64,000 bases of DNA, taken from positions 20,538,628-20,602,627 of the forward strand of contig OZ037767.1 in the NCBI GenBank assembly GCA_964035545.1, written 5' to 3'. Source of the DNA: Bugula neritina (taxonomy: Eukaryota; Animalia; Bryozoa). The translations under genes were made by a program, and so were the position numbers. The notes beneath the pieces are model-generated. The model was not told where the DNA came from. It saw nothing but the letters and a program-made list of their open reading frames with translations, and ran no database searches. Below, piece after piece: positions 16,301-60,340 of the stretch (position 1 is the first letter of the stretch; the number at the start of each line of letters is the position of its first letter).

Positions 16301-19300
16301 AAGAAACACGAAACAATTATTAACTTTGATTCCTGAAATGATAAGTTCTTTCAGGTCTTTTAGTTGAAAAACATCAACACCAGAAAAACTAGGAGCACAC
16401 ATAGACCGAAAGCTGTTAAGCACATAGAGAGGCTGTAAGCTGCTATAAGCACATGTAGACTAGAAGCCATTATAAACACACAGAGAGGCTGTAAGCTGTT
16501 ATAAGCACATGTAGACTAGAAGCCATTACAAACACATAGAGAGTCTGTAAGCTGTTATAAGCACATGTAGACTAGAAGCCATTATAAACACATAGAGAGA
16601 CTGTAAGCTGTTATAAGCACATGTAGACTACAAGCCATTACAAACATATAGAGAGGCTGTAAGCTGTTATAAGCTCATGTAGACTAGAACCTGTTACCAA
16701 CACATAGAGAGACAAACACATATTAAGCGCCAAAAGCACAAACACTAAAGTCACAAATCAACACAAAAAGCTACAAACCACTAAAACTACTAAGGACTAT
16801 TTAAGGTATAGCCACATGGAGTAGATTCCACATGAATCGCTAGCTAAAACTTTGCATAGATAACAAAATAGGGCAGTTCCGTTCGGATTTCGTAAGATCA
16901 AAATGCTGAATGAATACTGCAAAAAGTTCTAGTGATCTAATTGGCTGAGCATTATTTATCGAGTCCACTTTTTTTAGTTTAGTTTAGTTTTTCAAAATGA
17001 AATATTTCATAGCAGGGCAGTAAAACTATTGGCAAATGCAATAGGCCACTAGAGCTTAGCTCTTGCTGGCAACACATCGTGTGTAACAGGTAACTCTCGC
17101 AGTGAACTTTCACCAACATTCTACTTCATGTGGTCAACCTTAAGATTACTGCACACTAAAACTACTGCACGCTGAAGCTACTGCACACTAAAGCTACTGC
17201 ACACTGAAGCTACTGCACGCTGAAGCTACTGCACACTGAAGCTACTGCACACTGAAGCTACTGCACGCTGAAGCTACTGCACGCTGAAGCTACTGCACAC
17301 TAAAGCTACTGCACACTGAAGCTACTGCACACCGAAGCTACTGCACACTGAAGCTACTGCACACCGAAGCTACTGCACACTGAAGCTACTGCACACCGAA
17401 GCACACATCAAGACCTTTCTGGGAGTCGTGCTGAGCAAGTCTTTCCTGGTGGTCCCAGCCTACAGCCGACTGGTCAACCCTGTCGGTCTGTACACCATAT
17501 TTACCACCAAAACCCTTAGAATAATCTGCAATGAGTCCATTCAACACCCATATCAACATAACTACAGGATATACTGTGTATATACTATATATCAACATAA
17601 CTACAGGATATACTGTGTATATACTATATACCAACATAACTTCAGGATATACTGTGTATATACTATATATCAACATAACTACTATACTGTGTATATACTA
17701 TAAACCAACATAACTACAGGATATACTGTGTATACACAAGAGATCATAGACTGAGATCTTTCGGAGTTACCTTTTTGCGATTCATGGGCTTCTACCTTTC
17801 CCTGATAGGACCACCCTTCTGCACTCTGTAACAGACAGAGACCACAGTCTGAATAAATATTTTATGATTTATTTGAAGAGCTACATGTAATTTGCAACAA
17901 GTAATGGTATGCTCCACAACAGATCACTATATAGGTGCTATTTCAGTACTGCAGTTCATGACTTAGTAAATAAATTCTCATCAATAGATAAATTAAATAC
18001 AACACAGCATAAAGAGAACATGTTGGTTTTGGAGTTATCATCCATTACAGAGTACACAATTGAGTGTCTGATCAGAAATATATAATGCATAAATGAATAT
18101 GATTGCACAAAAGTGCCACATATTCATGAATCAGAATTGATATAAAAATTTACAATAATTGGCAAATCAGCAGCCAGTGAGATTCAAGGAACTACACAGG
18201 TGCCTGGCTGAATCACATATACTGATAATATTTATCTCAACTGCTAGTATTGGCAATCATAACTTCCTTGTTTGCACCTCAATACACTTTCATATGTGTG
18301 TTGAAATGCAGGTGAACAGAGAGCACCTTACTGCATGGCAAGTAGCGCAGAAGTTGGGCAGCAGAAATCTGGCATCTCAGGCTATTAAAAACTCTGATGA
18401 GAAAACACACTAAATTAAATACATATTATTTCAGCACACCTTCAAAATCTCAATAACTTTCCTTTAATTATATCACAACTAATCTTTCTTTAGTCGATCT
18501 ACTGCAGTATTTGTGTCTCAATTGAAAATCTTCTGCTACTTTTTATCAATAAAAAACCACGAGATTGATCAAACTTACCAAATAAAAAGAAAATTTATTA
18601 TATAGGGGAAAATGTCCCACAAGCTCATTAGCAAAGATAACTCCAATAAGAAATTTCCTTTTGAAATACATTTTCTCTATAAAAACCTCCCCCTGTGTTA
18701 CTTTGATTCAGTAATTCTGAAGATGTAGAGAGAGGACAAAGTGACAGAATACTATCAATTCTTACACGAAACACTAAATAATCATCTAAATGAGTGTATA
18801 CAACGCTGACTAATATACAGGAAGTAGAGGCAGCACCTTATCAACTCGGTCTGTCTGTACTCCGTACCGACCACCAAACCCGGTGGAGTAATCTTTCTGA
18901 GACTTGTGTTGAGCCAGCTTCTCCTGGTACTCCCAGCCAACCGCCGACTGAATTATAAGCATTTAGCAAAATTAATAAGTGGAATCACTCAGTGTATAGC
19001 CTGAAAATTAGTAAGCTGTTGATTTGGTATCAAATTTCTGGAGCCGAATTAAACTGCATCAAATGTATTCAACTTGATTTAACTAATCGGCATCATAACC
19101 TGTGACAGCTATGACGTAACCGAATTGTTCTACTATTACAATAGCTATGATACCAAATCAACACGAGTAATCAATGAATTAGCCAATGCATGATAACAGA
19201 GACAGATCAGAGTGATTGGTAGAGATTGGGTGACAGCAAGTGGTCACATGATCATAAAGAGCAGCGTCAGCAGTGCAAGACCTGATCTTTTCTGTCAGTC

Positions 19301-21952
19301 TGCACTCCGTATTTTCCACCAAAACCACTTGAGTAGTCTTTTTGAGAGGAATGCTTCTCAGTTGTACCGATATAACTGTACCGTGCTGCGCTCTGGCAGG
19401 GGAGATAACCACAAAGAGTAAAGCAAATATAGTAAGTATACAGGTAGAGAGTAGAGTATATATAGTAAGTATACAGGTAGAGAGTAGAGTATATATAGTA
19501 AGTATACAGGTAGAGAGTATATATAGTAAGTATACAGGTAGAGAGTATATATAGTAAGTATACAGGTAGAGAGTATATATAGTAAGTATACAGGTAGAGA
19601 GTAGAGTGTATATAGTAAGTATACAGGTAGAGTATATATAGTAAGTATACAGGTAGAGTATATATAGTAAGTATACAGGTAGAGTATATATAGTAAATAT
19701 ACAGGTAGAGAGTATATATAGTAAGTATACAGGTAGTCGGAGAGTAAATTTCTGCTAATCCACACAATATATAATACAATCCATACAATATATAATACAA
19801 TCCACACAATATATAATACAATCCACACAATATATAATACAATCCACACAATATATAATACAATCCACACAATATATAATACAATCCACACAATATATAA
19901 TACAATCCACACAACATATCATAGTTCATTTAAATGGTATTACAATGTGATGATATAGAAATGATTGGAGATCTTAAATCTGACCACAAAAAAAACAATC
20001 AACAAGCTGCTATAATGATAACGTAATATGGTATGATAAAATGTAACACAATATAATACAATATAAGAATATACGGTATAAGAGTATACGAAATATTGTG
20101 TAGCTAAATTCCTACCTTATCTACCCGATCTTTCTGTACACCAAACTTGCCCCCAAACCCTTTACTTGTGTCCGTCACACTGGCGTGTTGAGCAACTTTT
20201 TCCTGGTGATCGTGTCCGACAGCCGCCTATGCAGTACGAAACAAAGCAGTGTTATCAGAACATATTAGAACATGCATACTCACAGTATATCAAAATATAA
20301 AATGTTCTAAACTATAGCCATAGGTTGTAATACCAGAGTTTCTAAATCAACCACAGTGGATGTATAGTTGAAAGGAATAAGACTGCCATGGCAAGCTTGT
20401 TTTATACACATGAAATTACATGCATTAAACATTTCACATAGGTCTGCTTCCATCACTATTCACATTAACAGTACACTATCTAAGCCTTCTCTGTGTCATT
20501 AGAAAGCTTAAGGTACCCCACTTCTGGCCTCTACATATAAAACTTTATCTGCACCACGCTATAAAGCAGCCTAAAAAACGTCCAATTCAACCTTACATAA
20601 TGCTTCACAGTACACAGTTGCTTTCCTAAACCATATAGCTTACCTTACGTGCACACATAGTTACGCCAAATTCAGAGAATCCTGAGTTTTATAAATCTAT
20701 AAAATTTTCCACATAGTCTCCAAAGAGAAAGTAACTCTCACCTTGTCCATACGATCTTTCTGTACTCCAAACTTCCCTCCATACCCATATGACCCAGTGC
20801 CTTTCTCTTTCAGTTCTTTTTCTTTATACTTTGCGTCATCCTTCTGCACTTCCCCCCTCAACTCCTTCAGACTAAAACAATTTAAATACAGCATCAGGAA
20901 ACTGCCTGATTTATCTTCTGTTTTGCTTTAGACTTTAGTTGCTGCATATGGTGCTAACACTGAGCAATGCTAACACACCACAGCTAGCTAGCTAGCTTAT
21001 TTCAGACTTTTAAATCTATATTATTTGCATAGAGCATTAATCAAATTCACTAAAATAACTCATGTGGCATACAGAACAGAAAGTGAATTGAGGAAATGAT
21101 CAGTATGAAAACAAAAGTATTATATTAAAGTTCCACCACTAACACAGCCCAACTCTGTGAACAATGGCTTAGCAATGTTATTTCGAGAACATATTTGTTG
21201 AAGTGTAGCCTGTGGAAGATGCATAGCCTGTCAGTCAAGTATAGCCTATGAGAAGAAAGGGTGGTTAGCAACTCACTCGATAGCCGCCTGATGTCCTGAC
21301 CCTTCGACAGTCTTGGAACCCCAGCGTTGCTCTTTTTCTGACACATCATTCTACATTGTAAGAGTAACAAATACACCAACTAAAGGCACTGGTTAAATGT
21401 ACCGGCTAAATGCACTGGCTGTAGTAGCATAATACTCTCTATCAGCTAAATTAGTCAAACAAGGACTAATTCTATGAATACTTAATATATTTAAAGCAGT
21501 AACCAGCAAATTACTGTTTATATGTAAATAGAACGTAAATACTCCATATAACATGTGCAGAAAAAGTTAAACTTTGAAATAAAGCAGTAATTAATAAGAG
21601 TATTTACACACGTTGTATATCAACTACATAAATTAAAATTTATTTGTGAAAAAATATCTTACTTTTATAAACATAAAAACAAATGTAATTTACAACTATA
21701 TGTAAGTGGACAACTTTTACACAAAATTTTCATTAGCATCATATAAACGCCATAACCTTCTAAAAGTAGCAAACTTTAAATAAAAAAAGTTTTAAACTGC
21801 CCAGCAGTGTAGGTGCACATATAATAGATACTCTACAGCAAACTTGAGATACATCTGAGTATGTCTACCTGGAAGTCAGGGTCAGTTTCCCAGTCATCAT
21901 CGTCATCGGAGACTGTGACATTAACAGTGTTACCGGCAGCAGCCCTCCACAT
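10377..21952 (-). CDS. CTTN: Cortactin (Src substrate, actin/Arp2/3 regulator), 15 coding exons, ~672 aa
   Basis: Exons in gene order: 21869-21952, 21277-21350, 20742-20871, 20116-20226, 19282-19392, 18837-18947, 17771-17825, 17415-17525, 16095-16205, 15818-15984, 15586-15655, 14440-14648, 13557-14013, 12875-13014, 10377-10454. All GT-AG, phases consistent. Protein: N-terminal acidic [11 protein letters not shown] (Arp2/3-binding DDW), cortactin repeats ([14 protein letters not shown]), coiled coil ([13 protein letters not shown]), Pro/Tyr-rich region, SH3 ([15 protein letters not shown]...GWWKG...GLFPANYV). Confidence 0.96.
10535..10770. repeat. 12-bp minisatellite (ACTCTACCACTC variants) in the last cortactin intron
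   Basis: Visible tandem units; source of spurious ORF 10455-10643. Confidence 0.9.
11114..11161. mobile_element. 48-bp minimal PIF/Harbinger (Tourist-like) MITE
   Basis: TAA|GGCCTCATTCACACTTG...CAAGTGTGAATGGAGCC|TAA: imperfect 17-bp TIRs and a TAA duplication. Confidence 0.6.
13085..13310. repeat. 54-bp minisatellite, ~4 copies, cortactin intron
   Basis: TATATGACCTTGAAGGTAGCATAACCTCAGTGGAGACATTACA... repeated. Confidence 0.92.
14030..14430. repeat. 21-bp minisatellite filling a cortactin intron
   Basis: (CAGTATACACTACAGAGTATA)n; explains the YTTEYTV-type ORFs. Confidence 0.95.
17148..17402. repeat. 16-bp minisatellite abutting a cortactin donor site
   Basis: (GCTACTGCACACTGAA)n. Confidence 0.92.
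19425..19915. repeat. Two adjacent minisatellites (~27-34 bp and 21 bp) in a cortactin intron
   Basis: (ATAGTAAGTATACAGGTAGAG..)n then (AATCCACACAATATATAATAC)n. Confidence 0.92.
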
Positions 21953-48099: not shown

Positions 48100-51000
48100 A
48101 TGATGCAGATAGAGCAAAGTGTGCAAACCTGCTTTGCAAGTCAGAACTAACGTGCCATCTGACGCAGTTCGTGCAAGCGTTCAAAGACTCAGTGCCTGTA
48201 AAATGTGACTCATGTAACCAATTTACATGCACTATCTGTCACAGTCCATTTATGAAACAGGCAGGCCTCTCACTACATCTTAGAAAGGCTCACAGCAATC
48301 TATATCATGCCGCTTTACCAGCTGTAACAAATCAGAGTTGGAATTATGAAACCCTATCTGAAGTTGCAAGATGGGAGACGAAGTATGAAGGAGTTAGGAA
48401 CATTAATCAGAAGATCCAGGCGAAACTACCGATGTACACGATCGAACAAATTAAAGGAGTCAGAAACAAAAATCCTCAGTATCGAGAGATATTGGACACT
48501 ATCCAGAATGAACGGAATGAAGAAAGGACTACATCAACGGACGAAGCAGACACCAACAGCCCTACAAACCAACATGGAACGCTTGAACCTAACTTCGAAA
48601 ACCATCTTAAATATATTGATTTTATATGATTTGTAGCAAGTTACCACTAGCAGCTAATCCAAAGACATTAGTAGGCTGTCAAAGCTTTATCAATAGAGTG
48701 TTTGAATCACTCTTCCCAAACAAAGGAACGAAGTCAAAAGGGGTAAAAGTTATCCACCAAAAAGAATAGTACTATCAGGTCGGAAGAGACGAAAGGAAAT
48801 GTTTAAGAAGGTACAGAATGAAATGAAATCTGATCCCAAGATCGTTATTAATCAGATTATATCTGGTACCTACGAGGAAGATGAAGGCCCGATACCATCC
48901 ACGGCTGAAGCCTACTGGCGGAATCTATTCCAAAGTAAGTAAATTGCCGACAATAGACAGCTTGGAGCTCAAAACATCTACAACGAGCTTATCCAGCCCA
49001 TTACACTAATTGAGATAACTAATGTACTACGTAAAAAGTCGAAAGGATCGCCAGACATTGACGGGTACACCTAGAGGAACCTCAAGAAGGTGGACATAAC
49101 TCTTTTAGTGTCGTGTTTCAACCTATGGCTGTTAAGTAGTAGGTCGCCATCTAGTATGTCAAAAGGTATCACTACTCTCATACCTAAAGTCATAGGTACC
49201 AAAAATCCTGCCGAGTTCAGGCCCATCACTGTTACATCTACGCTCAGTCGCCTATTCCACTGCATACTTGGTGAACCATTCGCAAATACGCTACCATATA
49301 GCAATTGTCAAAAAGGTTTTAAGAAGGGCGACGGCCTCTATTTCAACTCAAAGCTTCTTCAAAAGGTCATCAGTGAAGCAAAAACCAAGTACAAGAACCT
49401 TAAACTAGCTTTCGTCGATGTCTCCAAGGCGTTTGACAGTGTATCCCATCACACACTCTGGGTTGCCTGTAGGCGTCTCGGTGTCCCCGAACACCTCATT
49501 AGCTACCTAAAACGCTTCTATGCAGCCGGAACCACCCAGCTGAAGCTCACAGGAAGAGTAGGTAATGAGCTAGAGACTAACAGAGGAATAAAACAAGGCG
49601 ACGCACTATCTGTGCACCTTTTCAACGCAGTGATAGAGCTCTGTACTAACAATCTGGAGAGCAATATCCACTACAAATTCGGCACCGGTGCCAAAGTAAC
49701 TTTCATGGCTTACGCTGATGACATTGTACTATTTAGCCAGACAGATGCTGGATTAAAGCAAAACTTTACAATTCTCGAAGAACAATTAAGTAAGTGCGGA
49801 CTCTCGATCAATTACGGAAAAAGCGCCACGCTCGGAATAACTTGTAAACAAAAGAAATGGCTGTGTAACCCACGAACCATCTTGAAGGTCAACCAAAAAG
49901 AAGTGGCGGCATTAACTATCAACGATACTTATAAGTATCTGGGCGCCAAAATAGGTGCGTTGGGAGCAATACACACACCCAAAGATGATTACTTAAAAGC
50001 ACTTAACAACATTACCAGAGCGCCACTCAAGCCACAACAACGGCTCAAGATTCTAAGAGACCATCTATTTCCAAAACTGTTGCACCAACTAGTAATCTCA
50101 ACAGTTAGAAGTGTCAGCCTCACACCTGGATTCTCTGACTAGATCTTTTGTGAAGCAATGGCTGAAAATAAAAATAAATTGCTCCAAGGCAATTTTCCAC
50201 GCATCTATTGAAGACAGTGAACTTGGGATTCTATCATTTCTCTACCAAGTACCACTACAAAGATACAACAGAAACTGCCGGCTACTCACATACAATGACT
50301 CACTAACAGATGTCATCACCTGCAACCAACCTACCTCAGCGCCTACCATCGCAGGAATTCCCCTTACATCTAGGGAATGTGTCAAAGAACACTTTCAAGA
50401 ACTACTACATAGCTCTGTGGATGAAAAAAGACTCATCCACCATCGACCATGCCTCAAAGTACATCAATGGGTCAGGTCATCGACCCATGCATGGCTGACA
50501 GGCCGGGACTTCATCAGAGCCATTCATCTCAGGCACAACCTCTTGCCGAGTGGCATGATGCTCTCTCGCATGAGCAGTTTACACTCAAAAAGTTGTCTTG
50601 TGTGCGTAAATGCACCACACACTGTCGCTCATATTCTGCAGCAGCGTCCACGTTCTCATGGAGGAAGGATTAAGAGACATGACGCCATCTGCAAATTCGT
50701 CTCAGACACAATGTCAAAGGCAGATTTTAACGTTGATTGGGAACCTCGGTTCCGGACCAGTGAGGGAATACTGAAGCCAGATCTAGTAGTGAAAAAAGAC
50801 AACTGTGCCCACGTTATAGACGTGGCTATCTGCAGTGATGGAATCAACCCCGAAAAAGTATACAATGATAAAGTTGCTAAGTACAGACCAGTTGTTGAAG
50901 CTCTCGAGGGTACTTTCAGTGAAATCAAGATATCGGCCTTTGTCATAAACTGGAGAGGTGCTATTGCCAAGAAAACGATCTCTGACTTTAAGCCCTTCGT

Positions 51001-51245
51001 TACACCCAACGCTTTTGCCACTGTCTCTGTAGGAACATTGTAGTATGGTAATCGACTGTAGTCAGCTTCTCTGAAGCCGAAGTGATAACGGGTTAGACAT
51101 ATGGACAGGGAACATCGCTGTCAAACTATTGTGCCCCTCGTATACGGGCCTAAATAGTATACAAATTCAAAACCATCTTTTATCCATTCAGGCTATTATT
51201 ATGATATTATGGATATACGGGTAAGCGGGCGGGACATTTTAAACA
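48100..51245 (+). mobile_element. Decayed R2-clade (RLE-type) non-LTR retrotransposon
   Basis: C2H2 finger CTICHSPFMKQAGLSLHLRKAH and Myb-like segment (48171-48629); RT (FRPIT, CQKGF, FVDVSKAFDSV, GIKQGDALS, AYADD; 49090-50142); degenerate CCHC, RHD and RLE endonuclease (KPDLVV, VIDVAI, KVAKY; 50111-51043). In-frame stops near 48627, 48940, 49072 and a frameshift near 50125. Termini approximate. Confidence 0.9.
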
Positions 51246-51340: not shown

Positions 51341-53575
51341 TTAGGAATCATCTCCTCTCTTGTAGCCATTGAACCCAGGAAACAGGTAAAGTTTTCGCAT
51401 ATGAGTGAGAGTATCCCAGATTACAACCAACTGTCCTCCACTCTCAAAATCGCGATCTACACACAGTTTTCTCACTTTAGTCTGTACCTGCACAACATAT
51501 AGAACTTTTACAATGAAGATAATATCATTAATTGTATAAATCAGTCAACCATTCATAGGTTATTTATGCAGTAGTTGGGTTTTCTTCTTTTATAGGTGTT
51601 ATGTGAGCTGGATATAGCTAAAATAACTACAAGCGCATAAGCAAATCATAGTGTAGGTAAAAAGCTGAAAATTGAAACAAGGTGACTAGAATATCATAAG
51701 GAGGACCTTTACCACTACTTTCAGCAAAGGTAGAAAAGTTTAACTGTTACACAGTGCAGTCAGAGAGTTGGCTCAATCTTAAGCTATACTGACAAAGCAT
51801 CAAATAGTTGGAATAGCACAGATAAATTTTTCAAGTTGAAAATTAAAATTTTCAATATTTTGAGGCGAATTGAGTAAGGACATATTGAATAAATGGAGAG
51901 TTAAACAATGAGGGGTACAAATGTGGCCGTAATTATTGAGTAAGTGTGAAGCATCATGTAAAGTAGATATTAGTGTAGTTATGTAATGATATTAATGTAT
52001 GTTTCCTGTAGCATTATGCAATACAATTAGTGGGTCACACCTACCTGTTTTAATATAGTGTAGAGGTCATGGTGACAGGCATGTTTATACATGGAAGATA
52101 CAAGAGCTCTAATCATTAGAGATCCAAACTCAGGGTGTCTCTTTGATATGAATGCTACAAGTAGATTGTATAACACAAATTATTTAACCAAGAACGAGAT
52201 AATATCTATTAATAACAAGCATCATATACAGTATAATATTGTGTATAACATCGTATTACTTACACTCCATGCTAGATTTCACTACTAGCAGGTCATCATA
52301 GTTTAGTCTATTCATAGTCTCAGCATCTTCCAATCTTTGAAATTTAGCAAGTGGGGGTGAGATGCTTTCAATCTCCTCTGTTTGAGAATCTCCGATATCA
52401 AATCTGTCAATACCCCTATCACCAAAATCACTCCTCTCTATAACACAAATGTTTAAAGGTGCGCTTTTAATTTCGATGAAAAAAGTACCGAGTTTCAGTT
52501 TAAAACACTCATCGGAATACCCCTTTACAGTTTTACTGAAACTCATTGACATCATATTGATGCGGAAGCTCACTTTCTAATATTAAAATATAACTAGCTC
52601 AATCCATATTTTGAAAACATAATGAATCTGTAAAGTAGACAGCATAAAAGCGTAATTGATCATGATACCCGATAGATTTAAAAAAATGAAGCTTTTACTT
52701 GAATCGATAAAGCTTAGTTTAATGTTTAAGTAAGTAATATAAACAAGAAAGCGATGATTGAATACTGACATCTACAAAGAGCACAAACTCATCAAATATA
52801 AATTTTAGAACATGCTAATACATCTGAGGTATTGCATCATACATTACATACATACATACCTAGCAAGCTAGCAGATTTTATGTATCAGCCAAACTGAGAC
52901 GTTTATGAATTAACCCTTGATAAGTAATTAGGTTAAAAGATGTACCTACTGAAGGAGGCAACTCTTAATTATAGATTGAGTATGAAGGACACGAAACGGG
53001 GTCTATCATAATAGCAACTTCTTGTCATTAAACAAATATCTGAATAATCTGCCACGTAAGAGAAGCATTTACCCTGTTGTAGCAACTTAATACCTCCACT
53101 GCAGGCTTCCAGTATAACAACCTTCGGTTTGCCAGCCATTCCTGTGAAGTTCAAAGGGGTCAAAAGGTCATACACATCAGTTAGTTTAACTCGCTTCATG
53201 TCTTTACCATAGATGTGGTTGTTCAGCCCTCCATGAGTCATGATAACCAACACATGACATCCCAGATCTTTGTGTTCCTCTTTTTTCACCTCAGATTTTA
53301 CAACAGACAGCATTTCCTACAAGTGTTTGAAGGGTACAGAATGCTCAACATTTTATATAAACTCGACAAAAAAAACCATGAAGAGCAAAAAGAACAAATT
53401 GTACCTGAGCCGTCAGATCTGTGTGTGGCACAACATCAAACTTGAACCCCTTCAACATGGCGGACATATTCTCAACATCAACATCTGAACCTTTCCTATA
53501 CAAATCTGGTCTCTTATCAAAATTCTTGTTGTTTATTATCAGAGCTCTGCCTCTCTTTCGCGTCATATTGAACAC
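51341..53575 (-). CDS. Caspase (peptidase C14A) catalytic domain exons
   Basis: Five exons give p20 with His-Gly (THG) and catalytic Cys in EACSG, an acidic intersubunit linker, and p10 ending RKLYLFPGFNGYKRGDDS*. Confidence 0.92.
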
Positions 53576-56500
53576 CTGGACACAATACAGAAGTATGTGT
53601 TATTGCCATAGAGGTATGACTACATAAAAATTACCATTCTATATGAGAATTAGCATTAGGAGCCATTACCTTATCAGTGTTTGAGAACAGCTGTCTCAAC
53701 CTAGGGTTACTGGTGGGATTCAGCCTTAGTCTGATCAACTTCATCTCTTCAACTTCCTCTTCATCAGGGTACAGATTGTCATCCTCATCAGAGAGATCAC
53801 TGAGATCATCATTGGCTGTCATTGTGGTGGTCATAGAATCTGATTGGCTACAGCTAGCAACTATAGAAAGTACAAAGAAAATTGAATTAGCAAATAGAAA
53901 AAAGACACAGAATATGCTAATTTGCAGATTGCCTTCAAGATTTAAGACAAAACTTTCTGGTTGAGCATTCCAACTGTATACTATGGTTTCTTAGTATTTT
54001 CATCTCCAACACATAGTGATAGTTCAAATATGTTTTTGTAGATAACATGAACTGTTGAAAGTTAGCATTTTTAATTAAAAAGTCAATTTGGCCAATTGCG
54101 ACAAGTTTGCCAAATTTTCTTGCATCATGAAGACAAATTACAAGAAAAACATTGTCTTTAATGACCTTTGTAATACATCTACAGTATAAATTATGATTGC
54201 TTTCAATATAAAAAACTATATTGAAGCTTTTTAAGGGTTTCTGTGTACACAGTTTTACACTTAAACAGTGCCATTATACACTATATATTCCTTTTCAAAG
54301 GATACAAAACAAAGACCAAATAAGTCATGTATTACTATTAGATAGTCATCTTCTGCATCAACGCAATTTCAATGCTTTCCAGTGAAGATATAAAAGAATG
54401 CTCTGGCAAGTAGAATTAAATAAAAACCGGCACATTTCTCAAAAAAGATATAAACACACTACTGTTAAAACTTTTTTGTTACTAGCAGATAGAAAAACTA
54501 AAGAATAATTACCAGATGTGTTTTGGCTTTCTTGCTGTTCCCCTCTCAGTTTCAGTTCAAGTATAGCTGTTTCAAACTTATCAGTTTCTGTCTCTAACAA
54601 TGCATCGCCTAAATAAGAAAAAAATTAACTACTTAAAAGATTATTATTTCCAAATTGAATTTAAATTTACAGGTTGCAGACCAAATTTATAGTGGTAACA
54701 GTTTTAAAATGAAAAACAAAATGATTGAGAGTCACTATTTAAGCCAACATAATTTTTATTGCCTTGTAAATAAACTTTACTAAGGTGAATGTTATATTGT
54801 ACTCTAATTTTTACTTTCTATGCATAAAATTTTAGACAATACACTTATTACAAAACATACATGGATAGACCAGAGCAGTGGGTATCTCGTCGCTATCACA
54901 CAGAGTTGTAGACAACGCACTACACAGCCTGATGTCTTGCAGTGGGTTCTCCATGGACCGAAGACACCACTGAGGACTACACACTTTCTTGAGACAAGGA
55001 AGTCTGAGTAGTAAGCAGTGAGCACAGTAGCATGTAGTGACTGGTCTACTTGCTGTCCAAGTTTCTAGAACATGTCTGAGGATGTTGTTGTTGGTTGTAA
55101 TAAGCTTTTTCCACATACTGCTAATGTTAGCAGCATCTGATGATACATAGAGCAAAACTTTTCTAGTTTTGTAGTCATGAACCAGCTGTGTGTAGATTCC
55201 ATCTTGATAGGCATTTGCTCCATTTCTCTTCACTTCGATTTTTGCAAAATCCAAAGGAAACATTTCCAACAAACCAACAGTCATTTGGTGGTACACATAT
55301 TGTGGTAATGCAAGACCATTGAACTGCGTTTCAACATGAAGGAGCATGATCTTTGGTGAAGAAAAAGAAATATTGTAAAAGTTTTGAGCAAATTGAGGTA
55401 CAATAAAGCATCGGTTCTTGCACTCTTTGTTTAAATACCCATGCAGCAAACGGAATGTCTGCAGTAAGCAAACAGCAACTTCAACATCTTCCAACTTCGT
55501 GAATGATGTCTCTTTTTCAATCAAATAAAAAAGAAGGCATTCCATCATCAAACCAGTGCGAGTAAACTGACTAACAAGTTCCTCAAAGTCTTGCTTCTCA
55601 ACACGTAATCTATTCTTTGAATAATACGGTTGAAACTGATCAACTCTCCTCTGCCATATGTTAGGATCATGATGATACAAGACACAGAGAAGTTTGGTGA
55701 CTTCTGAAATCTTGTGGAATATGTATGGCCTGAGAGAACTGATATCTTTATACCACAATACTTTACCACAGTCATGCATGTATGTGAGGATAGTGTCCAG
55801 CTGACCTGACCCAATGTGGTGAGATTCTGTTTGTACGTCTTTCAGTATCTCATCAAAGGTGCTGTACACAGATGGAAGAGACAGCACCTTTCCATTCACT
55901 TCTTCCCAGACTGAAGGCAGAGGTTTGACAAAGTGTTGACTGCTTTGAAGCAGAGAATTCTTGATCAGGTCAAACACTTCATACTTTTCATCTTTTCCCA
56001 CCTCGTAAATGTATCCATTGAGAAAAACTTCAGTTGACTTACTAAAATGCAAGATTCGAGCAAAGTCACCATCCAATCTCTTTTCTTCTCTCACAATATC
56101 TTCACACAACTGGTTTGAAATTTCAAGAAAACTATTTTTAAGCTTTTGAAACTGGATACTTTGAAACTTATCCTTATGTGTAAAGATAAGTTTTGGTGCG
56201 TCGAGAGTTGGGTTAGCAAGATAGAGGTGAGACATGTAATCAAAGGCTAATCTTCTAACAGCTTCTCTGGGTGTTGATTTATTTGAAACCTCATCATACT
56301 GTTCCATGTTAACTACTATGACTGGTATGCAATTTTGCTTCAGTGTCAGTTGATAAGTTATATGGTAAACTTCTTGACCCCCAAAATCAATGAGACGAAG
56401 CGCTGTGCCATCCACCTCAACCTCTTCAACATTAAACACCTTTGTTGTCTCATCTTTTTCAGCACCTGAACCTCTGTTGGTCAGAACTCTCTTTCTGTCA

Positions 56501-59500
56501 GCGCTCTGAAATGTTCTGATTAGACTTGTCTTCCCAGCCATGGTATTACCCAGTATTGCTATTGTAGCAAATGGTAGGCTTTTACCAGCACCTTTAGCCA
56601 AGTCTGTATAATATTGTCTCACAGCAGTTATTCCCCGCCTACATACTTCGATTGGAGGAGATGTGAGAGCATTACAACCATGTGCTTTCAGCTCATGAAG
56701 TTGAGTTAGCTGTAATATCTTACTATCCAGAGATGTCAAGAAATTATTCTTAGATATATCTAATTTTTGCAGTCTACTCAAGGTGCACACAGGAGATGGT
56801 ATACTGGTGAGGTTATTGCGAGATATGTCCAGCTTTTGTAACTTCTGTAGACAATGCATGCTGTAAAATATAAAGTATATTTGGTAAATTGTCAATAGTT
56901 ATACTAGTGATATATATAGTTGTACAGATATGATAAACTGGTCATTGAACAGTGCTCAAGATCTTTTTAAAAAATGAGCTGAATACTATAAGGTATTTGG
57001 TAAAATGTAAGTACTCATGTACATATACTAACTATGTGTACACTCGAGCGTGTGAGCGTACATAGATATGCTGATAAGAAGGAATGTTGAGGTAGGTGAA
57101 TGTACATAATCAACAATTTGTAAGCCATCAGATTAAATCATATATTACATTATTGAAAGTTGTTTTAAGCTCTTTATTACGATGGTTATACAAGCCAGAG
57201 AAAACTTTGTTGCTTTTTCTAAGTGGCCAAACTCGATTTTCAAAGAATATGGTGCAAAAAAGCATTCTCAGTTATTTCCTCAGCACCGATGACAGACCCT
57301 TGCACCACAATATTGTTAACATAACAATATGTCACTTCACAAACACAATGCCATGATACAACACATTGCCAAGAATCAAAGTCATAATTCCTGGGACAGG
57401 CGTCAAAATAAAACCCAACAGGCAAAGCATAGTGCACACCTTTTTACTTCGCGGCCTGATATTTCTAAAGGTCTTCAAAAATGTAGATTTGCAGGTAGAA
57501 AGACTTAGAGTTGACTATTTTAAACTTGTTGTGCAATTGCCGTCATTTCCTAATGTTTTCACTACATGCTGCAACCTTGTCATCGTGGCATTCAGTAGAA
57601 ATGCCCATGATGATTTTTGAGTTTGAGTTTATGAATAATCTGCACAACAGCTGTTAATTTTATTTAAGCTGTCAAGCTAAAATATTAAAATTAATTATCT
57701 TAAATTGGCCAAATTACTTTACGGTAAAAACTTTACTGCGTAGAGTTTATAGCTGGCGTTAAATTTTAGACTGTGTAAATTTTGTTTTTCAACAGCAGTA
57801 GCTTTTTATCACTCAGGTGGGTGAAAAAATTATACTATTAAAGTACTCTTCACTTAAGAGGAGGCAACTCCGCGAGATCGATCTGACACTCTCATGGAAG
57901 ATCGATCTGAGTACAATTCTCAGATTGATCTCGCTGAGATCGATCAGAGATCGATCCATGGAAAGCCCGTGAATGTATATTCTTTGTAAATTTTTGCAAG
58001 CGCGTGGAGCATGTTAGTTCATTCTAATTCCTCTAATTAGTTCTCAACAACTAACATATATTTAACCAAGGAAACAGTACTATGAGTTTCATTACATGAA
58101 TATGTATGTAGACAGATTTTGAGTTAGTGATGAGCTATTATCTTCATTACAGTATCATTCTACACTATAGTATAATACACACCTGTTTGGTAGAGTTGAC
58201 AGTTCACAGCCCCGCATGTACAGCTCTCTCAAGGATAATAAGGATGTGAATATATCATCAGGTAGACCTTCAGATAGGTTAGTCATTGATATGTCCATTA
58301 CCTCGAGATTTTCAAGTGAAGATATGCTGTAACATGGCATAGAATGGTCCATACTGTATCACCCATACATGATAATGAGTGGTAAAAATGTACAACAGCA
58401 TCATGTACACAGCACACAATAAGCGAGTAAGTGTGTTCTAATATATATGAATACACACATTTTAGGTTATATTGCACATGTATACCTTTGTAATAGAGTT
58501 GACAGTTTACAGCATTCCATGTGCAACTCTCTTAATGATAGTAAAGATGTGAATATATCGTCAGGTAGACCTTCAAATAGGTCATTCTCTGATATATCCA
58601 ATACCTCAAGACTCTTCAGTGAGCATATGCTGTAACATAACATAAAATGATCTATACCATACTATTATATTATAAATATATAATACATAGTACTTATTAA
58701 ACAATGAATAATGTACCAGGTCACACAACGCACAATAATCATACAAAATATCCATGCAATATTACACTACCACATAAGAGTACTATTCTATCAATTATTA
58801 GTGTAGGCATACTTCATATTGAGCATGAAAACCTATTGTATTATATAATAATTTTATGCTACACATCTTCCTTAACATGCACAACTCATACTACATAGTC
58901 TGCATCAACACACACCTGTTTGGTAAAGTTACCAATTTACAGCCCCTCATGTCCAACTCTCTCAATGATAGTAAGGATGTGAATATATCATCAGGTAAAC
59001 CTTCAGATAGGTTATTATTTGAGATATCCAATACCTCGAGATTCTTCAGTAAAGATATGCTGTAACATAACATACAGATGTGAACTTTATTAGATATGAT
59101 GCATATGTTTGCATTCTAACAGTCGTTTATTCGATGGAAACAAAAACAATAATAATTATTGCTTTATACAAAATTATATAGTAGTAATTATTATTATTTG
59201 CAATCTCATTTTTATTCTTCAAATAAATTACTCACACACACATATATATACACACACACACACACACATATATATACACACATATATATACACACATATA
59301 AGTACACACTCACACATGCTATATTGCACCATGGATCTTTGCAGGAGCATACACAGAAAAGATAAAAGCATTAAATGTTCAATTTTAAAACGCATACACT
59401 ACTATCAGTAAAATGCAACTGAATAGAATGTAACACTTAATCAAGAAAATGGGCTCGCTAAATAGCCATTAGCTAATTAGGTCACCACATTCACATTTGC

Positions 59501-60340
59501 CATTCGGCATTTTCAACAAAATGACCCCCTTTTTTGTTTGAATTTTCGTCAGTGGCGACTGCGAAAATTCATTTAATGTGGCCTTACATCAAGACAAGTG
59601 TATGGGTAAAGAGAATAGTGAGATTACTCTGTTTAGTGTGCGTTAACCTAACTTGTTAACCATTTTCAAGCTTGGTCTGGCTTTACAGTGAATAAGATGC
59701 ATTTACACTAAGAAGTCAGGTGTCTTAGAAAAAACTTGTAAGTAAGAGTTCACACAGTAAAAACAAAATTTTTCAACACATGTTTCAACATTACTATAAG
59801 TTTTATGATTAGTTCACATTCTACTAGTAAAATGCTTAACAAGAGATAACTGTATAACCATCTCCTAAGACCCTACAGACTAAAACAATATTATTGAAAG
59901 ACTACCATCATAACCACACTATACCTGGTGCAGTCAGTATTACTGTCTACATTACATAGCCTTAGATGCGTAAGATGAGGAAATGGTGTGTTGATATCTG
60001 GAGGAATGTCACCTTCCAGTATAACATGAGTAACTGTATGATGTCTACTTATATCATTAATCTCTTCTTTAGTGTAAGATGTAGCATAATTTGACATCCA
60101 CATATCATCATTTTCATCTATACTGCATGTGTTAAACCATACCCTGTATTTCTCTACAAATTATATAACAATTATAAGCCATCAATAAAATTAGAATTAT
60201 TTCAAGAACCAACTAAAACTAAAAACTCTTACAAAGTAATTTGGTTTGTTAATGAAAATATTTGTTTACTAACTGTTCACGGATTGACTTGGATGTCGAG
60301 TTGGGGGTTGAGTTGAAATTTCAGTTACTAGCTGTTCCAT
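51341..60340 (-). CDS. LRR-Roc-COR (ROCO GTPase)-caspase fusion protein, 13 coding exons, ~1279 aa
   Basis: Exons: 60274-60340, 59925-60153, 58916-59059, 58486-58629, 58183-58326, 54861-56860, 54513-54608, 53670-53860, 53405-53575, 53094-53316, 52264-52437, 52045-52154, 51341-51487. Total 3840 nt, one open frame across all GT-AG junctions. LRRs, Roc motifs (GNTMAGKTS, DFGGQEVY, THKD), COR, acidic linker, caspase p20 (RGRALIINN, RKGSDVD, IMTHG, GKPKVVILEACSG) and p10 (SKRHPEFGS, RKLYLFPG). Confidence 0.85.
54861..56860 (-). CDS. Large exon encoding terminal LRRs, Roc GTPase and COR domain
   Basis: Part of ORF 54832-56895: LRRs, ROCO linker LTSPPIEVCRRGITAVRQY, P-loop ILGNTMAGKTSL, G2 ETT, G3 DFGGQ, G4 THKD, COR features (LPSVW, YMHDCGKVLWY, FIVP), C-terminal CYCAHC. 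Confidence 0.93.
57625..57971. mobile_element. Right-half copy of the 28807-29595 MITE
   Basis: Colinear with ~29245-29595 and ends in ...CATGGAAAGCCCGTG. Lies in the intron between the LRR cassettes and the Roc-COR exon. Confidence 0.8.
58183..59059 (-). CDS. Three tandem 144-nt phase-2 LRR cassette exons of the ROCO-caspase gene
   Basis: 58916-59059, 58486-58629, 58183-58326. Each encodes two 24-aa LRRs (LEVxDISxxxLxEGLPDDIFTSLLSLRELxMxxCxLxTL) with near-identical splice flanks. Confidence 0.9.

Follow-up and report, generated by a model that had tools for sequence, protein, structure and literature searches.

The stretch of 64,000 nucleotides of Bugula neritina DNA that was analysed here (the window) raises the question of whether a sensor composed of LRRs, a GTPase switch and a caspase can be combined in a single polypeptide chain, and how such a protein might operate. 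A sequence-only reading of the locus had joined 13 exons in one frame of 3840 nt. Number and frame are retained in our gene model, which is located on the minus strand between 60340 and 51341, with a total length of 3825 nt that is 15 nt below the earlier value and that encodes 1274 residues followed by a TAA stop. Its parts, with the evidence that defines them, are:

60289..60340, minus strand: exon 1, start ATG and 17 residues; ATG and GT donor, fitting frame
59925..60153, minus strand: exon 2, conserved N-terminal region, residues 18-93; 67 matches in the own genome, upstream of clusters of LRR exons; no Pfam match
58916..59059, minus strand: exon 3, 144 nt, phase-2/phase-2, two LRRs of 24 residues; Pfam LRR_1/LRR_8, repeat family of three copies
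58486..58629, minus strand: exon 4, 144-nt LRR exon; 81% nucleotide identity to exon 3
58183..58326, minus strand: exon 5, 144-nt LRR exon; 85% nucleotide identity to exon 3
54861..56860, minus strand: exon 6, 2000 nt, residues 238-904, last LRRs, Roc GTPase, COR and Cys-rich end; Pfam, profile search, model and RNA contigs
54513..54608, minus strand: exon 7, bridging, residues 905-936; RNA joints 54605/54860 and 53860/54513, contigs X1-3 and X7-17
53670..53860, minus strand: exon 8, acidic linker, residues 937-1000, DxxD sites D958, D961 and D964; RNA contigs and motif positions
53405..53575, minus strand: exon 9, start of the caspase large subunit with S1 Arg1027; PF00656 E 2e-10, joint 53573/53668 in X1, X4 and X8
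53094..53316, minus strand: exon 10, catalytic His1085 (MTHG) and Cys1129 (EACSG); PF00656 E 8e-12 and alignment
52264..52437, minus strand: exon 11, intersubunit linker (DxxD sites D1138, D1145 and D1148; DIGD/S) and start of the small subunit; RNA joints
52045..52154, minus strand: exon 12, small subunit with substrate-binding Arg1195; RNA joints and alignment
51341..51487, minus strand: exon 13, end of the small subunit and TAA stop; RNA joint and depth, frame

All 12 introns are bounded by GT-AG and the joined exons form a single open frame with zero internal stops. An origin as processed retrocopy is ruled out by the retained introns. Exons 1-5 and the junction between exons 5 and 6 are based on splice signals, reading frame and paralogs, and RNA contigs were compared with the other exons; exon 1, with its 52 nt, is the least certain of the 13. 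Domains were assigned by a Pfam scan of individual exons, rather than of the joined protein, which returned LRRs, Roc, a weak COR-A and, on exons 9 and 10, Peptidase_C14.

The connection between both halves of the protein is illustrated by contigs from four runs of four studies, which were taken as RNA by guess or library record. These contigs cover exons and avoid introns, and joints at introns 6-12 are among those listed, where the ones at introns 9-12 fit the gene model but may partly derive from contigs of paralogs. Contig X1-3 (563 nt) matches 55044-54860 and 53860-53668, with the 95 nt in between corresponding to exon 7, and extends for a further 90 nt past the joint 53668/53573 into caspase exon 9. 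Contig X7-17 leads from the end of COR into the linker, and contig X4-9 contains exon 7, the linker and 141 nt of the caspase. The spanning pieces, with lengths of 185 and 193 letters, differ from the window at 6 and 7 positions, respectively, and are thus about 96.5% identical, compared to 78% and 89% for the nearest paralogs compared over the same two pieces, which is most simply explained if the spanning contigs are alleles of the window locus. The RNA joints 54605/54860, 53860/54513 and 53573/53668 agree with the proposed junctions 54861/54608, 54513/53860 and 53670/53575, and the coordinates given for the two in-phase bridging exons (54513-54608 and 53670-53860) are exact. As postulated, one transcript connects Roc-COR with the caspase in at least one isoform, and the gene is real, spliced, transcribed and intact. 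A non-canonical joint at 53801/55766 that skips 1964 nt appears in contigs of all four runs and is probably an effect of paralogs or repeats.

These contigs bear on the view that the locus harbours two adjacent genes, one for a ROCO protein that stops at 54832 and one for a caspase, where occasional read-through would make the fusion a minor product or an artefact. Such an arrangement would agree with the in-frame stop 27 nt beyond the donor of exon 6 and with the low contig depth over exon 7, although paralog divergence affects depth in this region. Against it, spliced contigs connect the ROCO and caspase parts, and the 563-nt contig, which includes the end of COR, the two bridging exons and part of the caspase, shows that not every transcript of the ROCO part terminates at 54832. 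The same order, including the linker exon, recurs in 40 of 42 paralogous loci and in 18 RefSeq proteins of Watersipora subatra. We thus rejected a two-gene artefact as largely refuted and regard separate genes as very improbable. Since the contigs do not provide the shares of isoforms, a caspase-free isoform might exist.

The central domain of the protein is Roc-COR, and neither NACHT nor NB-ARC was found in the chain. Roc scores 32.4 bits in Pfam at a cut-off of 27 (E 1e-7) and contains the motifs G1-G4, with the P-loop GNTMAGKT at 342, DFGG at 396 and THKD at 465. COR-A is below the Pfam cut-off (E 0.046), and a profile search places COR directly C-terminal to Roc, with matches to 3DPU and 6HLU at E-values of 1e-22 to 1e-23. 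A model of Roc-COR calculated from a 66-row alignment shows a pLDDT of 90.5; a single-sequence AlphaFold model was discarded (pLDDT 37). The retained model superimposes with a TM-score of 0.62 on dimeric LRRK1 and of 0.54 on C. tepidum Roco, and it also matches LRRK2, the C. tepidum structures 6HLU and 3DPU and the isolated COR in 3DPT. Judged from sequence and model, with intact Roc G-motifs and COR fold, the protein is a member of the Roco family. A kinase domain, as found in DAPK1 and the LRRKs, was not detected by Pfam in the scanned exons. At the C-terminus of COR (54861-55030, minus strand), a CxHC motif at 850 and a later cysteine correspond to Cys548, Cys551 and Cys590 of the Roc-COR alignment, which are near-invariant in 66 relatives and might constitute a zinc site at the end of COR.

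The caspase was locally aligned with nine Watersipora proteins, which bears out its description as a full p20 and p10 with an intact catalytic dyad: H1085 and C1129 and both S1-pocket arginines, R1027 and R1195, are present, and p10 is complete and aligns to its end. The canonical pentapeptide QACxG is altered to EACSG, with a Glu at the position of the S1-pocket Gln, where the Watersipora relatives contain QACSG. Since fold homology and dyad are retained, EACSG is a variant inside the caspase family rather than a reason for exclusion. The replacement may shift the preference at P1 or lower the activity and, as it is shared by the clade of the window gene and some paralogs lack the cysteine, activity and specificity cannot be assumed. 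The caspase is connected to COR by a linker of 96 residues, of which 24% are acidic and 21% Ser or Thr, with DxxD sites at 958-964 (D958, D961 and D964); the sites D1138, D1145 and D1148 are located between the subunits. In line with the reported absence of CARD, DED and death domains, the Pfam scan of the N-terminal exon and linker exon 8 found none of them, and a death fold hidden in the linker was rejected in light of this result and of the acidic character of its 96 residues. By its sequence, the protein is a caspase with variant pentapeptide, and it is neither a classical initiator, in the absence of CARD or DED, nor an NLR.

The altered active site might also reflect a different role, in which the Glu-type clade including the window gene would comprise proteases of weak or altered activity that act as regulator, decoy or helper in a cFLIP-like manner and form heterodimers with Gln-type members. 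The presence of ExCSG in almost every type A paralog inspected, as opposed to QACSG in Watersipora and in paralog L042, and the missing cysteine in L032 and L039 (EASSG/EASNG) would agree with such a function. However, His, Cys and both Arg are retained in the window gene and the Cys in most type A copies, and activity is compatible with a substitution at the Gln position of the pentapeptide in Drosophila Dronc. We thus consider this role unlikely, though worth bearing in mind.

The properties of the N-terminal half are those of a variable module. Exon 2 (residues 18-93), for which 67 matches were found in the genome, is probably an LRR cap, and the LRR exons show at least 150 matches. Three 144-nt phase-2 LRR exons are present in the window gene, and their number in paralogs ranges from about two to at least nine. 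In a set of 22 LRR exons, the entropy is 1.6 bits at concave-face positions compared to 0.6 elsewhere and pN is 0.31 compared to 0.12. In this set, a pN/pS of 0.81 at concave positions does not demonstrate positive selection, and dN/dS is below 1 between the three LRR exons of the window gene. As far as their sequences tell, the LRR exons form modules that vary on the binding face, and the combination of a large family with receptor-like variation of the LRRs fits the idea of a sensor.

The size of this family is reflected in at least 73 matches to Roc-COR in the genome (216 Mb), with 50-78% identity, which are mostly clustered on contigs 1, 5 and 6, while the window gene is isolated on contig 3. 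Exon 6 is open in nearly all of the 73 paralogs. A caspase exon follows downstream on the same strand in 40 of the 42 loci examined, with long flanks for 12 and flanks of 1.5 kb for 30, and both loci lacking the exon were inspected with the short flank. Two types of caspase, which share 35% identity in their first exon, are found behind Roc-COR units that are about 90% identical (up to 92% in L011 and L013). To explain their distribution, the Roc-COR tree needs six changes, of which well-supported branches force three or more, as counted on quick and FastTree trees from which the divergent L030-L042 and loci without an assigned type were excluded. This points to an exchange of modules or a gene conversion of the front half. 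Within this family, the window gene is a compact, intact and transcribed member of the Glu-type clade (1274 residues, three LRR exons).

Several paralogs show further peculiarities. L032 and L039, in the cluster on contig 6, combine an intact Roc-COR with a dead caspase whose cysteine is lost (EASSG and EASNG). In L034, L035, L036 and L037, the equivalent of exon 11 is duplicated or triplicated in tandem, with divergence between the copies, thus either the length of the p20-p10 linker varies or splicing is alternative. Matches to exon 2 are found together with caspase exons on contig 7 (around 5.07-5.11 Mb and 7.58-7.73 Mb), contig 4 (21.1-21.2 Mb) and contig 8 (4.8-5.0 Mb) and, since these loci are outside the 73 scored matches, the family is probably larger.

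This expansion coincides with a paucity of other receptors. An exon-wise six-frame search of the genome, which can miss genes, found a single partial match to NACHT and none to NB-ARC, suggesting that the B. neritina genome seems almost devoid of NLR-type receptors. Three matches to the gasdermin N-terminal domain above cut-off, at 2048552, 4286293 and 4312189 on contig 2 (exon-wise search), are on sequence grounds candidate substrates of the caspase. Variable LRRs and high copy number would suit any system that distinguishes self from non-self, and the family might thus serve allorecognition or the programmed degeneration and regeneration of polypides in the colony instead of pathogen defence while using the same switch. 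Such a role would fit the detection of transcripts in RNA runs from four studies for which no challenge is known, yet birth-and-death clusters, effector swapping and scarcity of NLRs resemble families of immune receptors, and we regard a function in the colony as quite unlikely.

The only named close relatives found are proteins of the bryozoan Watersipora subatra, 18 of which combine, as RefSeq entries, a Roc-COR region with PF00656 and carry automatic names such as MFHAS1 homolog. Several Watersipora models do not contain a caspase, and caspase-free isoforms or genes may thus exist. The caspase of a Watersipora member finds its best PDB matches in caspase-3, CED-3 and caspase-9. Among the named matches, no Roco-caspase was detected outside bryozoans, in searches limited by word or length that do not prove absence, and the literature, with subscription journals mostly uncovered, contained neither work on the bryozoan family nor a functional test of any member. 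Matches to Roc-COR in amphioxus end in death or GT4 domains and LRR-Roc-COR-TIR proteins exist in anemones and Aplysia, thus illustrating that the coupling of Roco proteins to variable effectors recurs among animals.

The earlier claim that no characterised animal protein of this architecture is known holds in a narrow sense, whereas the design itself has precedents in bacteria, Owenia and amphioxus, where it is uncharacterised in the papers cited. Bacterial conflict proteins of the LRR-AP-GTPase-COR type can end in a caspase, which Kaur et al. (2021, PMC8195603) list with other C-terminal effectors, at least 24 in total. The bacterial proteins share the domain order, and paralogs within one genome bear different effectors; they are computational predictions, whereas the bryozoan protease is a true animal caspase encoded with introns, and the bryozoan fusion is thus probably independent. 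In Owenia fusiformis, one caspase with a ROC pro-domain is mentioned in passing (Horkan et al. 2024, PMC11463336), in a likeness by description where the passages on this gene report neither LRR nor COR, and where the paper gives no function and contains no bryozoan. Amphioxus models of LRR-caspases likewise unite LRRs with an intact caspase in a single chain, and Zhang et al. (2008, PMC2575513) proposed that they provide a short path leading from recognition to apoptosis, with Roc and COR unmentioned in text and supplements. Ectocarpus ROCO LRR-GTPases are an expanded family of candidate immune receptors that, as here, shuffle LRR exons (Zambounis et al., PMC3341825). They differ by one repeat per exon instead of two per 144-nt exon, by the absence of a caspase output from the abstract and by a demonstrated diversifying selection, which is not demonstrated in the bryozoan family. 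MFHAS1/MASL1, DAPK1, LRRK1/2 and C. tepidum Roco share the LRR-Roc-COR core and its fold, but they are single-copy and lack a caspase, with a kinase, a death domain or nothing as output; MFHAS1 orthologues are effector-free and thus distinguished from the window protein by its attached caspase. The NLR inflammasome and the Apaf-1 apoptosome would work alike by combining sensor repeats, a nucleotide switch and activation of a caspase by proximity. They are STAND ATPases with a death-fold adaptor, in contrast to the adaptor-free GTPase with covalently attached caspase found here, whose assembly is, by analogy, probably a dimer rather than a wheel.

Taken together, the contig leading from COR to the caspase, the Roc-COR fold, the 73 paralogs, the caspase exons in 40 of 42 loci, the 18 Watersipora proteins, the variability of the concave face and the scarcity of NLRs favour a receptor with built-in caspase, as do the gasdermin matches, the nucleotide cycle of Roco proteins, the effectors of bacterial Roco proteins and the exon shuffling in brown algae. 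We thus lean slightly towards the view that the protein belongs to a family of intracellular one-chain receptors that has expanded in bryozoans and whose members would work like an NLR or Apaf-1 with its initiator caspase included. In such a receptor, the LRRs would hold the switch in check unless they bind a ligand that is foreign or derived from damage. The resting state would be a GTP-loaded monomer, which upon triggering would hydrolyse or release its nucleotide and dimerise via COR, whereby the flexible linker of 96 residues would allow two caspase domains to meet in place of CARD or DED adaptors. Self-cleavage at D1145/D1148 would mature the enzyme, cleavage at D958-D964 may release it, and the caspase would then cut effector caspases or gasdermin, leading to cell death. 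The dimer behaviour of human LRRK2 is debated and may not follow that of the C. tepidum protein. The armed GTP monomer and the firing GDP-bound or empty dimer are drawn by analogy from C. tepidum Roco, which is a dimer when empty or GDP-bound and a monomer with GTP (PMC5714945), and from DAPK1, which is inhibited by GTP binding (PMC6337361), and by the same analogy a trigger via hydrolysis or nucleotide release appears more likely than GTP loading. This direction of the nucleotide cycle is the single point in which the mechanism differs from the scheme of the sequence-only reading, where sensing by the LRRs could drive dimerisation of Roc-COR and directly activate the attached caspase.

The length of the linker also bears on a mechanism in which Roc-COR would act as a switch for localisation or scaffolding, either by LRRK2-like recruitment to damaged membranes or by formation of higher oligomers, with the caspase being activated in trans by another protease. 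A long flexible linker need not pass on the geometry of a dimer, DIGD/S resembles the site of an effector caspase, and MFHAS1 makes nucleotide-dependent complexes of undefined nature, whereas C. tepidum Roco dimerises through COR and caspases with long prodomains are generally activated by proximity. We consider activation in trans improbable. A receptor with directly gated caspase can be extended to a wider proposal, which we put forward tentatively and with less than even confidence: a repertoire of at least 70 one-chain Roco-caspases would have largely replaced NLRs and Apaf-1 in these bryozoans, diversifying by gain and loss of LRR exons and by recombinational swap of Gln-type, Glu-type and dead caspase modules, and in its members the monomer-dimer cycle of the GTPase would directly gate an initiator caspase. 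If the mechanism is true, it would define a class of animal cell-death or immune receptors whose caspase is activated by a GTPase switch without STAND ATPase and adaptors, and self-cleavage would offer a natural binary read-out of the nucleotide state in which Roc-COR is dimeric and active. The latter question has long been debated and bears on LRRK2 and DAPK1, and the family contains dozens of natural variants that could be used for testing.

In the vicinity of the gene, the window contains a reverse transcriptase of non-LTR type (49090-51043, plus strand; RVT_1 E 2e-27, YADD), which is split across two overlapping frames and whose end is separated by 300 nt from the oppositely oriented stop codon of the caspase, and a frame with a weak C2H2 finger (48171-48629). 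A more distant frame with HS1/cortactin repeats (19267-19929, minus strand; E 6e-11) is probably part of a cortactin gene.
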